Part shown: one piece after another, positions 6,172-11,731 of the stretch
Layout of the letters: each line of letters begins with the position of its first letter
How positions within the stretch are numbered: position 1 is the first letter of the stretch
From: Blastocladiella emersonii ATCC 22665
Taxonomy: Eukaryota > Fungi > Blastocladiomycota
Length of the DNA stretch: 64,000 bases
Direction of reading: 5' to 3'
Assembly: GCA_025594325.1 (NCBI GenBank)
Contig: JANHCV010000003.1
Span: 1,426,001 to 1,490,000 of the forward strand
Notes under the pieces: model-generated
Told to the model about the DNA's origin: nothing
Databases searched by the model: none
Seen by the model: only the letters and a program-made list of their open reading frames with translations
Position numbers and translations under genes: made by a program

Positions 6172-6879
6172 TTAAACGAGCTGGAACTGCGACTGCGACT
6201 GGAACTGCGAGGCGTCGATGCCGTGGCCGTGCGCGCCCGAGAGGTCCTGGAACTGCGACTGCGACTGGGCCTGCACCGCGTCGCCGTGGCCAAAGTTGCC
6301 CTGGAACTGCGACTGCGACTGGGCCTGCAGCGCGTCGCCGTGGCCGTGGCCGGCGTTCCACTGCGACTGAGCCTGCGACTGCTGCTGGAACGCGTCGCCG
6401 CCGTGGCCGTGACCGTGACCAACGTCCCACTGCGACTGCTGCTGCGCCTGCGACTGGAAGCCGCCATCGCCCGCCTGGAACTGCGACTGCGACTGCTGCT
6501 GGAAGGCGTCGTCAACCGTGTGGTGGCCGCTGCCCCAGTTGCTCTGCGCCTGCGACTGGAACTGCGACTGCGCGCCATGGTCACCGCCAAACTGGTTCTG
6601 CGCCTGCGACTGGAACTGCGACTGCGCGCCATGGTCACCGCCAAACTGGTTCTGCGCCTGCGACTGGAACTGCGACTGCGCGCCATGGTCACCGCCAAAC
6701 TGGGTCTGGGCCTGTGACTGGAACTGCGACTGGGCGCCGTGGTCGCCAAACTGTTGCTGTGCCTGCCACTGCGACTGCGACTGCGCGCCGCCGTTGCCGG
6801 CGGAGAACTGGGCCTGCGACTGGGCCTGGGTCTGCACGGCCGGGATCGAGATCGGGGCGAAAGCGGCGGTGGCACTCAT
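6172..6879 (-). CDS. 235-aa Q/S/G/H-rich low-complexity repeat protein (QSQFQSQAQ motifs), unknown function
   Basis: ATG at 6879 in MSATAAFAP. Repeats GDHGAQSQFQSQAQNQFG and GHGHGDA.QAQSQSQFQ. TATA-like box about 95 bp upstream. Host-like codon bias. Confidence 0.75.
   Translation of the reverse strand: MSATAAFAPISIPAVQTQAQSQAQFSAGNGGAQSQSQWQAQQQFGDHGAQSQFQSQAQTQFGGDHGAQSQFQSQAQNQFGGDHGAQSQFQSQAQNQFGGDHGAQSQFQSQAQSNWGSGHHTVDDAFQQQSQSQFQAGDGGFQSQAQQQSQWDVGHGHGHGGDAFQQQSQAQSQWNAGHGHGDALQAQSQSQFQGNFGHGDAVQAQSQSQFQDLSGAHGHGIDASQFQSQSQFQLV
6543..6753. repeat. 54-bp coding tandem repeat (3 near-identical copies plus 1 degenerate)
   Basis: Unit tctgcgcctgcgactggaactgcgactgcgcgccatggtcaccgccaaactggt starts at 6543, 6597 and 6651, with a diverged copy at 6705. 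Confidence 0.95.
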
Positions 6880-7903: not shown

Positions 7904-10900
7904 TCACGACGAGCCGACCTGCGAGTCCATGGGCGGTCCCCACCGCAGCTTCTGTACAATGGCGGTATCCTTGCCCTTGAGGGCGCCGACTGAGACGAGC
8001 CCCGCGTACGACGTGTACCCGCACAGCGTCATGGCGCCGGACGCCGTAGCGGGCGCGACCACGGGCTGCGCGCGGACCATGGCGTCGCGCTTCACGTCCC
8101 ACAGGAACATCATTCCGTGCGAGCTCCACGCGAGCTCGGGCTTGGCCTCATCGCCGCGCTGCAGGATCGCGCCCGGGTTGCTCGGGTTCTTGGCGTCGAA
8201 CATGGACGGGCTGTTGGGCGTCGTGCTGAGCGGCGAGCTGAGCTGCGCGAGCGACGACGGCATGCGCCGGAGCAGGCTCGATGCGACCGACGTGGACCCG
8301 TCGGCGGGGCTCGGCGGGTCGCACGTCCCGACCATCGTGTCGAGGCATAGCATACGCTCGAGGCGGCTCCCGCCGTCAGCACCTGCGCCCGCGTCCCACA
8401 TGGCGTGCAGCGCGACGCCGCACACGCGGCGCTTGGTCCCCACGCCGTCGATGCCGTGCGACGGCAGGTCGCCGCCGTCGTGCATGCTGGGCAGCATCGG
8501 CGTGGTGAGCCGCGGGAGGCGCGCCTTGAGCGGCTCCCACTGCAGCGCGCGCAGGTCGTACACCTCGGCCGTCTCGAAGAAGGTGTCGACGGGCGCGTCG
8601 AGGTGGAACTTGAGGACGCACGCGGTGGCCGCATCGTAGACGAGGTGCGGGCGGTGCTTCTTGGACACGGGCACGCTCCATTTCGGCTGGCGCATCCACT
8701 CCTGGGTGCGCGGGTCGAGCCGTGCGAACCGCCGCCGGCTGTCGCCGCCGCCACCCACAAACAGCGTGCCGCCGCCGTGGATCACGCAAATGTCGTTCCA
8801 CCCGGACGCGTACAGCTGCGGCGCCGACACGAGCCGCATGGTGCCAAGGTCGAGCCGCGTCACCGAGTGCCGCTTGACGCGCCCGCCGCCCACCAGGTAC
8901 ACGGACTGCTCGCGCGGCAGGAACCCCATGTCGAACGTCCGCGGCGTGTCCCACCCGGCAAACAGGTCGTACACGTCCAGCGACACGTCCGCCGCCTGCC
9001 GCACCTGCTCGGCGCCGTCCGTGCGCCGTACCGCGGCCCCCGGCTTGAGCGCAATGGGTTTCTCAAACTCGCCGCTGGGGAGCGACAGGTAGTGGATCGT
9101 CGCGTCGCGCCCCGCCACGAAGATCGGGTGGTGCTCGCCCTCATCCATGGCGTGCGCGACGACGGGTACCGGCAGGATCGCGCGGCCCGGGTGTTCGACG
9201 CGGTCGAGGTCCACCGAGCGGCACGTGTACAGCGGCACGAACCCTTCCTGGCTCGCGCCCGCCTCGTCCTGGCACGACGCCCAGATGAACCCGCGCTCGT
9301 AGATCCCCGCCGGCGTCGGCAGCGGGTACACGGGCGTCTCGCCGTCGGGCACGTCGAGGAACCGCGCGCCCAGCTCCACGGGACGCACGCTCACCGAAAT
9401 CACCGTGCCCTCGGGCGGGAACAGCAGCGGCGAGCCGACGCCGAGCAGCTCGAGAGGGAGCGCGTTTTCGGCGGCAGCGTCGGGTGTTGCGGGCGGCTGT
9501 GATGCCGGTGGAGATGATGGCGGCGGCGAGATGGGTGCTGTTGGAGACGGTGGTGCTGCACGCGGCGTTGGTGGCGCGCTCGGGATCGGGATCGGGTGCA
9601 TGACAGGTAGTGGCGGGAGCGGCGGTGCCGGCGCGAGCGGGAACATGGGCCCGGGCGGCGGGTACAGCGTGCCCGACGGCGACGAGGAGAGGGGAGGCGG
9701 CGTCGGCATGGGCATCGGCATCATCGGGACCATGGGCATTGGCATCGGCATCGACGTGGGGAAGCCCGACGGCGAAGGGAAACCGGTTGGTGAAGGGAGT
9801 CCCGACGGCGACGGCATGTCGCGCGGACCGTCGTACGGGGCTCGAATCGCGTCGCGGATGGAGCGGGCCTGCGAAGCCTGGCTCATGGCGCGGCGCAGCG
9901 CGCGCTTCTCGCGGTCGAAGCTGGACAATGGCGGCGACGACGAATCCTCGACGCCGGCTCGCTGCAGGATGGCGCTGGGCGGGATCGAGCGGTGGCGGGC
10001 GAGTGCCGCCGCCCCGACCTCGCGGCTGCGGCCGCGCTCGCCACCGTCGTCGTCGTACTCGTCTTCCGAGTCGTACGAGCCGTTTGACGACGAGCGGCCG
10101 AGGCTGGACAGCGAGTCGACGGCCGAGTCGTGCTTGGACGACAGCTTGCGCACGAGGGTACTGCTCGGGCTGCCCTGCACGGCGGCGCCGCCGCCGCCCA
10201 TCGACCCGACGGCGACGGGGTCGTTGCGCGACATGACGTCGAGCCGGCGGGCGACCTCCTCGAACCCGGGCCGCACCGACGCGTCCTGGGCCCAGCAGTC
10301 GCGGATGAGCGCGGCAAACTCGGGCGGCGTGTCGTCGGGGATCTCGGGCCGCGCGCCCTCGAGGATCGACATGCGCACAATGAGCGGGTCCTCGCCGTCG
10401 AACGGGTACTCGCGCGACGCCACCTCGTACAGCATCATGCCGAACGAGTACACGTCGCACGCCTCGGTGAACCGGCCGCCCGCGCGCAGCCGCTCGGGCG
10501 CCGTCCATGCCAGCGTCATGTACTGCTTCCGCGCGTCGGTCGGCTCGGTTCCCGAGCGCGTGGCGGTCGCGGACGCCGTGGTGAGCAAGCTGGTGCGCGA
10601 CTTGGCAAGCCCAAAGTCGGACACCTTGGCGTGCAGGTACTCGTCGAGCAGGACGTTGAGCGACTTGAGGTCGCGGTGCTGCACGTTGTTGGCGTAGAGC
10701 AGCTGCATGCCGCGCGCCGCCTCGAGCGCGATGCGGTACCGCAGTGGCCATGGCAGCTCGACGTCGTCGTCGCGCAGGACCTCGGACAGGTTGCCGCGCG
10801 CCATGTGCTCAAGGACGATGCAGTAGCGGCCGTGCTCGGTGCAGATGCCGTAGAGGCGCGGGATGTAGCGCGACGTGATGCTGCGCAGGACGTCGACCTC

Positions 10901-11731
10901 GCACTTGAAGTCCTTAAGGGCCGCGGGACCGAGCCGCTGCACGTCGAGCACCTTGATGGCGACCTGCTCGCCCTGGTACGTGCCGCGGTACACGACGCCG
11001 AACCCGCCGCGGCCAATCTCCTCCTCGAAGATGAGCTTCCAGTACGGGATCTCGAGGTGCTGGAACCGGTCGCCCGCGAGCGGCTGCGGCGCGACCACGA
11101 CGGTGCGCAGGTAGTCCTTGAGTGAGTCGACCGTCTTCTTGGCCAGGTCCTCCTGGTGCACGTAGATGCCGTTGAGCAGCGCGAGCTCCTCGGTGTGCAT
11201 GGCGACGATCGAGTCGAGGATCTCGCGGATGTGCGCGGCGTCGGCCTACGTTGTGGAAAATCGTCAGCCACGGGCCGCGCGTCGGACAGGTCGCAGGTAT
11301 CGCACCTCCTCAGCGAGCTTGTCGTCGTCGGGGTTGAAGAGCGAGGCGACGTTGATCTGGACGTCGAGCATCTGCATGACGTGGGACAGGCGGTCGTTGA
11401 TCTCGTTGAAGGCGGAGCGGAACGAGCCGAGGGTGAGGAGACGCTGGTGCCACTTGGTCTTGCTGGAAAACGACTCGACGAGGGCCTGGGCCTGGTCGAC
11501 GAGCGAAGCGAGGTCCGCCAGCGTGTCCTCGACGCGGGCGACCTTGGCGAGCTCGCCCGCGCGCGCCAGCTCGTCCAGCATCTCGGCGAGCTGCACGACG
11601 CGGCGCGCCAGCAGCTGGCACTGCTCGTTGTTGACCTTGACCGAGTGCGCGATCCCTTGCAGCCCGGCAGCGCTCGCCACCAGGCCCGTGATGATCTTGG
11701 CGCTCACCGTGAGGACGACGAGGTCCACCAT
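7904..11731 (-). CDS. MLKL-like N-terminal 4-helix bundle + TKL-type protein kinase + Pro-rich linker + Kelch-like repeats; intron 11246-11305
   Basis: Exon 1 (11306-11731) VKVNNEQCQLLARRVVQLAEMLDEL...AQALVESFSS...FNEINDRLSHV joins in frame (GTGCGA...CGTAG) to the 1098-aa ORF. Kinase motifs IGRGGFGVVY, VAIK, HRDLKSLN, DFG, WTAPE, DVYSFG. C-terminal VYLVGG, LFVGGG..RLDPRTQEW and AEVYDLRALQWE. Confidence 0.9.

Follow-up and report, generated by a model that had tools for sequence, protein, structure and literature searches.

The gene considered here lies in a 64,000-nucleotide stretch of the Blastocladiella emersonii ATCC 22665 genome (contig JANHCV010000003.1, positions 1,426,001 to 1,490,000), hereafter the window. 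According to the open reading frames and the sequence, it occupies positions 7904..11731 of the minus strand, which carries all features given below, and it encodes in two exons a protein of 1255 amino acids (aa), with the start ATG at 11731 and the stop codon at 7904-7906. By analogy with the MLKL proteins of animals and plants, this protein is regarded with moderate confidence as cytosolic, as belonging to the MLKL_N-kinase family and as a candidate one-chain switch for cell death or immunity, in which an MLKL-type four-helix bundle (4HB) is followed by a brace, a TKL-type Ser/Thr kinase predicted to be competent, a linker and a Kelch-type domain. A preliminary description, made from the letters of the sequence, had assigned the gene to the same coordinates and strand and had attributed it to an early-diverging fungus, which agrees with the identity of the organism.

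The MLKL-type N-terminus

Exon 1 (11306..11731) encodes residues 1-142, which comprise the four-helix bundle and the start of the brace. In the Pfam searches, exon 1 (11306-11731) and exon 2 (7907-11245) were queried separately, whereas the later analyses were performed with the deposited protein, P0001. It was verified that exon 1 matches MLKL_N (PF22215) at residues 29-125 with E=4e-16 and a score of 59.2 bits (cut-off 27), while no HeLo or HELL domain was matched by Pfam at E up to 1. When the single exon-1 sequence was compared with PDB by phmmer, MLKL bundles alone were matched (human and mouse, E ~0.003). A family profile built from 49 sequences aligned to MLKL residues 3-171 (mouse) or 1-179 and retrieved mouse MLKL 4BTF with E=1.7e-25 over bundle and brace, a match that is partly circular because the profile includes vertebrate MLKLs. 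With a profile restricted to four Blastocladiella sequences, each of the best seven PDB matches was an MLKL chain (E 1.5e-4 to 1.6e-3), and the next one, which was unrelated, appeared at 0.074.

The predicted fold is consistent with these matches. The AF2 model of residues 1-205 reached a predicted local distance difference test score (pLDDT) of 90.8, and the bundle (residues 1-125; 11357..11731) is formed in it by helices 4-29, 35-58, 67-89 and 102-121. When this model was submitted to Foldseek, the top nine matches all corresponded to the human MLKL N-terminal domain, with a probability of 1.0 and a target TM-score of 0.66-0.73, but with E values of only ~0.02-0.14. In VIA-align, the Z values were 14.6 to 6ZZ1 (137 residues, 2.9 Å), 13.7 to AtMLKL2, 12.6 to mouse MLKL and 10.5 to AtMLKL3, compared with ≤10.3 for unrelated helical bundles and 8.4 for the CC-R domain of NRG1.1, although such values are ambiguous for helical bundles if taken alone. 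Taken together, the fold scores and the sequence statistics make the homology of the N-terminal bundle to MLKL secure. The preliminary description had recognised this bundle from a residue pattern, all of which is present (the Q37-C38 helix, VESFS, FNEINDRLSHV and, at the exon junction, DDDKLAEE followed by ADAA), and the Pfam match, the Blastocladiella-only profile and the highest fold Z bear it out, as does the structure search against MLKL-like folds that had been proposed there as a check.

Beyond the bundle, a brace-like connector (residues 134-193; 11093..11332, a span that includes the intron) is helical in the AF2 model, and the VIA alignments to MLKL extend into it, up to model residue 150-164. 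The modelled helix and the family-profile alignment thus agree with the brace segment that had been anticipated after the bundle.

Helix alpha-1 (residues 4-29; 11645..11722) is unusually hydrophobic, since its best 19-residue Kyte-Doolittle mean is 1.95, versus ~0.7 in the vertebrate MLKL helices over the same alignment columns and 1.45 in helix 1 of a paralog, P0003. This value lies above 1.6, the limit classically applied to membrane-spanning helices, and, given that residues 4-29 hold one charged residue, the segment could instead be a signal anchor or transmembrane segment, in which case the protein would be a constitutively membrane-tethered kinase and not a switchable soluble executioner. 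Such an alternative is considered improbable, because the segment corresponds in the alignment to the first helix of the MLKL bundle, is modelled as packed within the bundle at pLDDT 85-97, and is less hydrophobic in the paralog.

A catalytically intact kinase

The brace leads to a TKL-like protein kinase domain (residues 214-477; 10241..11032), which was matched by PK_Tyr_Ser-Thr with E=1.2e-52. Its sequence contains the G-loop GRGGFG (10997-11014), the VAIK motif with K240 (10952..10963), the HRD catalytic motif (10670..10678) within the Ser/Thr-type catalytic loop HRDLKSLN, and the DFG motif (10610..10618), which is followed by a Ser/Thr-rich activation segment of 42 residues ending in APE. 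These motifs, together with the alpha-C Glu, are present in both P0001 and P0003. Therefore, the degenerate catalytic motifs that mark the pseudokinases of the MLKL family, as in animal MLKL and the AtMLKLs, were not found here, and the earlier statement that VAIK, HRD and DFG are intact, unlike in animal MLKL, stands and extends to the G-loop.

The nearest solved kinases were EGFR (the best whole-sequence match, in which the chain contains the kinase twice), CTR1, RIPK4, MLK4 and RIPK2, which indicates a generic TKL-type kinase. Although the deposited record bears the name "RIPK1", the similarity of the kinase to RIPK1 (E ~5e-31) is no better than that to CTR1, MLK4 or Src. Additionally, no death domain was matched by Pfam and no RHIM-core motif was found in the protein, so that the deposited name is a misnomer and a similarity label only.

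A fully intact and generic kinase favours the main rival explanation, according to which the protein would be an ordinary TKL-group signalling kinase, with a bundle that regulates it, oligomerises it or localises it to the membrane or cytoskeleton, and with a tail that recruits substrates, no lysis being involved. This explanation is regarded as possible, if doubtful, and it is opposed by the fact that the bundle is specifically MLKL-like by sequence and by fold, and not a generic coiled coil.

As a separate observation, in the kinase-only matches to residues 1-490 the best after the paralog and the JGI kinase P0057 were Ser/Thr kinases of Pandoravirus and Cedratvirus (P0058-P0062, P0065), which share 34-40% identity over the kinase and outrank the plant receptor-like kinases listed there.

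Splicing of the bundle to the kinase

In the list of open reading frames, the gene is represented by a 155-codon frame starting at 11731 and by a 1098-codon frame running from 11200 to the stop at 7904-7906. Between the exons lies a phase-0 GT-AG intron of 60 nt after codon 142 (11246..11305; GT at 11305, AG ending at 11246), in which a CTGAC branch-like site is found, and exon 2 extends from 11245 to 7904, with codons down to 7907 followed by the stop. The joint translation of exons 1 and 2 matches exactly the deposited B. emersonii ATCC 22665 protein P0001. An intron after codon 142 and in phase 0 recurs in three other genes, which are that of the paralog P0003 (63 nt) and two of B. britannica; the B. 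britannica gene behind P0002 has a 63-nt intron at the same codon and phase. Across these four genes of two species, the intron sequences have diverged, while the flanking coding sequence has been kept.

The fusion could alternatively be an artefact of the gene model, in which retention of the intron would give a free bundle of 155 aa and a separate kinase gene would start from ATG 11200. In favour of this possibility, the reading frame of unspliced exon 1 is closed by a stop after 13 intron codons, and the frame downstream of the intron is open for 15 codons before the in-frame ATG at 11200, the first of the long open reading frame. Nevertheless, it is held to be very improbable in view of the GT and AG ends, the CTGAC site, the phase, the identical codon position in the paralog and both B. 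britannica genes, and the divergence of introns whose coding flanks are conserved; moreover, the 15 codons before ATG 11200 are conserved as brace sequence, and the spacing between bundle and kinase is conserved across the family. By this comparative evidence, exon 1 is taken to be spliced to the kinase exon, and the joining of the two in the preliminary description agrees with both the conserved intron and the deposited model.

In B. britannica, the deposited 182-aa model P0004 (MU625314.1, L004 7142-7195) is truncated, since it wrongly reads into the conserved GT intron to a stop, whereas an exon with the brace and the G-loop follows it on MU625314.1 and occupies L004 7195-7467, where the contig ends.

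The linker and the C-terminal tail

The kinase is followed by a low-complexity, Pro/Ser-rich linker (~residues 480-735; 9467..10234), which contains 22% Pro, 17% Ser and 17 PxxP motifs and has no Pfam match. The region after the linker comprises ~520 residues and is ~35-37% identical to the paralog. An SH3-like module at residues 752-819 (9215-9415) was considered and dropped, being without Pfam support: no match was obtained there at E up to 10, and the segment is only loosely conserved in the paralog.

The conserved C-terminal region (residues 830-1255; 7907..9184), which is 35% identical to the paralog tail, is a possible Kelch-type beta-propeller with borderline Kelch matches. In Pfam, the best Kelch_6-like motif was located at residues 962-992 (8696..8788) and a Kelch_1-like motif at residues 1031-1048 (8528..8581). 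Their scores of 20.7 bits for Kelch_1 (cut-off 20.1) and 20.5 bits for Kelch_6 (cut-off 25.3) were reached only when residues 830-1060 were scanned alone, since on longer queries Kelch_1 gave 14.4-16.7 bits, below its cut-off, with 14.4 in the whole exon-2 protein. In the paralog P0003, Kelch_1 and Kelch_6 were matched at homologous positions with E values of 0.01-0.05. Additionally, motifs of the hydrophobic-run-plus-GG and YD...W types are visible in the tail and conserved between the paralogs, and the language-model features of both paralogs pointed towards Kelch/RAG2 clusters (0.92-0.93), a finding that counts only as a lead.

On the other side, several results were negative or uninformative as to a propeller, and they count against a switch governed by such a domain. 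The AF2 model of the tail, made from a two-sequence alignment, had a pLDDT of 28.7 and was unusable; a tail profile found no meaningful match in PDB; self-alignment of the tail for repeats returned one weak pair only (E 0.32); and when the tail was aligned by hhalign with the Kelch region of P0064, a Kelch protein, E was 0.073, as with shuffled controls. In word-based searches, carried out with residues 782-1255 and with the two-paralog alignment, no relatives of the tail were found beyond the protein itself, the search with residues 782-1255 having missed even the known paralog, and by these searches the Kelch-like tail is found only in Blastocladiella. On the whole, a Kelch-type propeller is the somewhat favoured assignment for the tail, and the long disordered Pro/Ser linker probably leads to a lineage-specific, beta-rich domain of Kelch type. 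Thus, of the Kelch-like propeller put forward in the preliminary description, the borderline Kelch motifs were recovered, and the propeller fold is putative.

The tail also carries a Ser/Pro-rich insertion of ~70 residues (8096-8314, ~residues 1120-1192) that is absent from the paralog and probably represents a disordered loop inside the putative propeller.

Family distribution and genomic context

The paralog P0003 (1289 aa; L001 10001-13933) is located on the same contig, 118 kb away and 66,003 bases past the window end, and has the same architecture as P0001, with 65% identity in the core and 35% in the tail. It lies next to genes for calreticulin and for a kinase that carries a KA1 domain; both are likewise found around the B. 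britannica gene on L004, in synteny.

A full HMMER scan with exon 1 retrieved 53 proteins at E up to 1e-3, the closest being P0003 and two B. britannica fragments; both B. britannica contigs end just after the bundle or the G-loop, so that the tails were not recovered. The architectures of the family include about twenty bundle-kinase-Sel1 proteins of ~600 aa, single relatives with an LRR tail and with an NHL propeller (bdelloid rotifer), two relatives in which TPR repeats are N-terminal to the core, and several that resemble vertebrate MLKL, one of which, from frog, is named MLKL in its source. Sel1 repeats were not matched by Pfam in the B. emersonii protein. Because the start of the kinase falls between residues 205 and 221 in most relatives (residue 214 here), and HRD and DFG are kept in many of them, the sequences indicate that the bundle-brace-kinase module is old and conserved and that the repeat domain has been swapped around it, with Sel1, LRR, NHL or Kelch-like domains at the C-terminus and TPR at the N-terminus. 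A core placed beside interchangeable LRR, Sel1, NHL or TPR domains is a pattern typical of innate-immune receptors, which argues against an ordinary signalling kinase.

The preliminary description had divided the protein into sensor, switch and executioner and had suggested a census of paralogs and their C-terminal domains. This census revealed a constant core and a variable added domain, which fits a variable sensor on a conserved core, and the difference between core and tail identity in the two paralogs fits it as well; the identification of the sensor as a propeller is putative.

When a tree was built from the core, the two Blastocladiella sequences formed a pair (100/100) that fell outside the Sel1 clade (98/98) and was only weakly grouped with the vertebrate MLKLs (87/63). 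Since the amino-acid composition of this pair was flagged as deviant, no conclusion is drawn on its deeper placement.

The genes neighbouring P0001 encode TUG-UBL1, PGAP1 and SMC domain proteins and several products without a Pfam match. The next gene downstream on the same strand (6172-6879; L002 14853-15560) encodes a Gln/Ser/His/Gly-rich protein of 235 aa, also without a Pfam match, that is built of repeated QSQFQSQAQ.QFGGDHGA units. It was considered as a conserved partner and rejected, as no similar gene adjoins the paralog.

Comparison with known systems

Animal MLKL has been described as a pseudokinase (PMC10951266). The B. emersonii protein resembles it (4BTF, 2MSV, 6ZZ1) in the homologous bundle (Z 12.6-14.6), in the brace and in the kinase fold placed at the same distance from the bundle. 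However, animal MLKL is activated by RIPK3 and ends after its degenerate kinase fold, whereas in the B. emersonii protein VAIK, HRD and DFG are retained and 780 residues of linker and tail follow the kinase; in addition, this protein has a much more hydrophobic helix 1 and lacks an evident RHIM partner.

Bundle, brace and kinase are likewise shared with the plant MLKLs and Pm13, with fold Z values of 13.7 (6LBA, AtMLKL2) and 10.5 (6KA4, AtMLKL3). The AtMLKL kinase domains have been described as pseudokinases, and Pm13, an MLKL_NTD protein from a wheat relative that acts in immunity and confers resistance, has an intact kinase with all catalytic residues (PMC10951266), as does the B. emersonii protein. 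In contrast to the latter, the consulted descriptions of AtMLKL and Pm13 mention no repeat or propeller domain, and these proteins belong to a different kingdom.

Among early-diverging fungi, MLKL homologs had been found only in Glomeromycotina, for which MLKL_N-kinase-Sel1 proteins were reported (PMC8778642). These proteins and the LRR, NHL and TPR variants share with the B. emersonii protein a three-part plan of MLKL_N bundle, kinase (in which HRD and DFG are often retained) and repeat domain, the last being putative in B. emersonii, but the B. emersonii tail is not Sel1, LRR or NHL, and a Pro/Ser linker of ~255 residues is inserted before it. The architecture is therefore less singular than the preliminary description implied, since both an intact-kinase MLKL_N protein (Pm13, PMC10951266) and the MLKL_N-kinase-Sel1 proteins (PMC8778642) precede it. 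A Basidiobolus "MLKL" and rotifer MLKLs clustering with fungal and plant ones have also been described (PMC11476962).

The fungal HeLo/HELL executioners, such as HET-S and HELLP, belong according to the literature to a distantly related helical-bundle superfamily, and their hydrophobic N-terminal helix has been implicated in membrane attack (PMC12881547, PMC9815663). The B. emersonii protein differs from them in that no HeLo/HELL match was found by Pfam and no NLR partner nearby, and its control would be exerted by the fused kinase and not by amyloid templating.

A possible mechanism and its alternatives

The domain homologies, the catalytic motifs, the gene structure, the paralog and the conserved core with interchangeable repeats provide the frame for a mechanism modelled on MLKL and Pm13, in which homology suggests a function in cell death or immunity. 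In the resting state, the bundle would be held inactive by the brace and the kinase, as it is in MLKL. Binding of a ligand or partner to the C-terminal domain would then bring molecules together or relieve autoinhibition, and the active kinase would phosphorylate its own Ser/Thr-rich activation segment, which would replace the separate RIPK3 step of animals. Once released, the bundle would oligomerise and the very hydrophobic helix 1 would engage the membrane, leading to ion leak or lysis and, as an outcome, to a regulated cell-death or immune response. According to the literature, the N-terminal domain of MLKL is able by itself to trigger necroptosis through the formation of pores, and the isolated domains of several animal MLKLs tested so far were cytotoxic (PMC11476962), which speaks against a signalling kinase without lysis.

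In addition to the results concerning the propeller, some observations count against a lytic switch of this kind. Bundle residues 1-125 are slightly acidic, with 12 Lys+Arg versus 14 Asp+Glu, whereas the vertebrate MLKL counted likewise is net basic (20 versus 16). No NLR or other immune-type gene was found among the neighbouring genes, and no amyloid-type C-terminal motif or RHIM-core motif in the protein, so that none of these features links it to known necroptosis-like circuits. Moreover, a role of plant MLKLs in immunity need not involve obvious cell death. The signalling-kinase explanation draws on the same bundle charge and on the same lack of immune-type neighbours, as well as on the fact that Kelch-type domains are commonly protein-binding adaptors.

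Implications

A bolder version of the one-chain switch, considered rather unlikely, is that Blastocladiella possesses a self-contained, ancestral-style necroptosis module, in which a single chain would sense through its propeller, license itself by autophosphorylation and kill through a bundle with a membrane-inserting helix 1. If this were true, animal MLKL and RIPK3 would have arisen by the splitting and degeneration of an all-in-one kinase, and kinase-gated lytic cell death would occur in zoosporic fungi. The origin of MLKL has been described as unclear (PMC11476962), the extent to which fungal bundle proteins share a necroptosis logic has been presented as an open question, and wider study of fungal HeLo/4HB proteins has been urged in reviews (PMC12881547). 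In the searched literature, no mention of Blastocladiella together with MLKL was found.

The Blastocladiella gene belongs to a little-studied fungal family, and together with its paralog it extends the MLKL_N-kinase family to Blastocladiomycota, with an intact kinase and a new tail. Since the organism can be cultured, it would allow a direct test of whether an active kinase gates an MLKL-type bundle within one chain.

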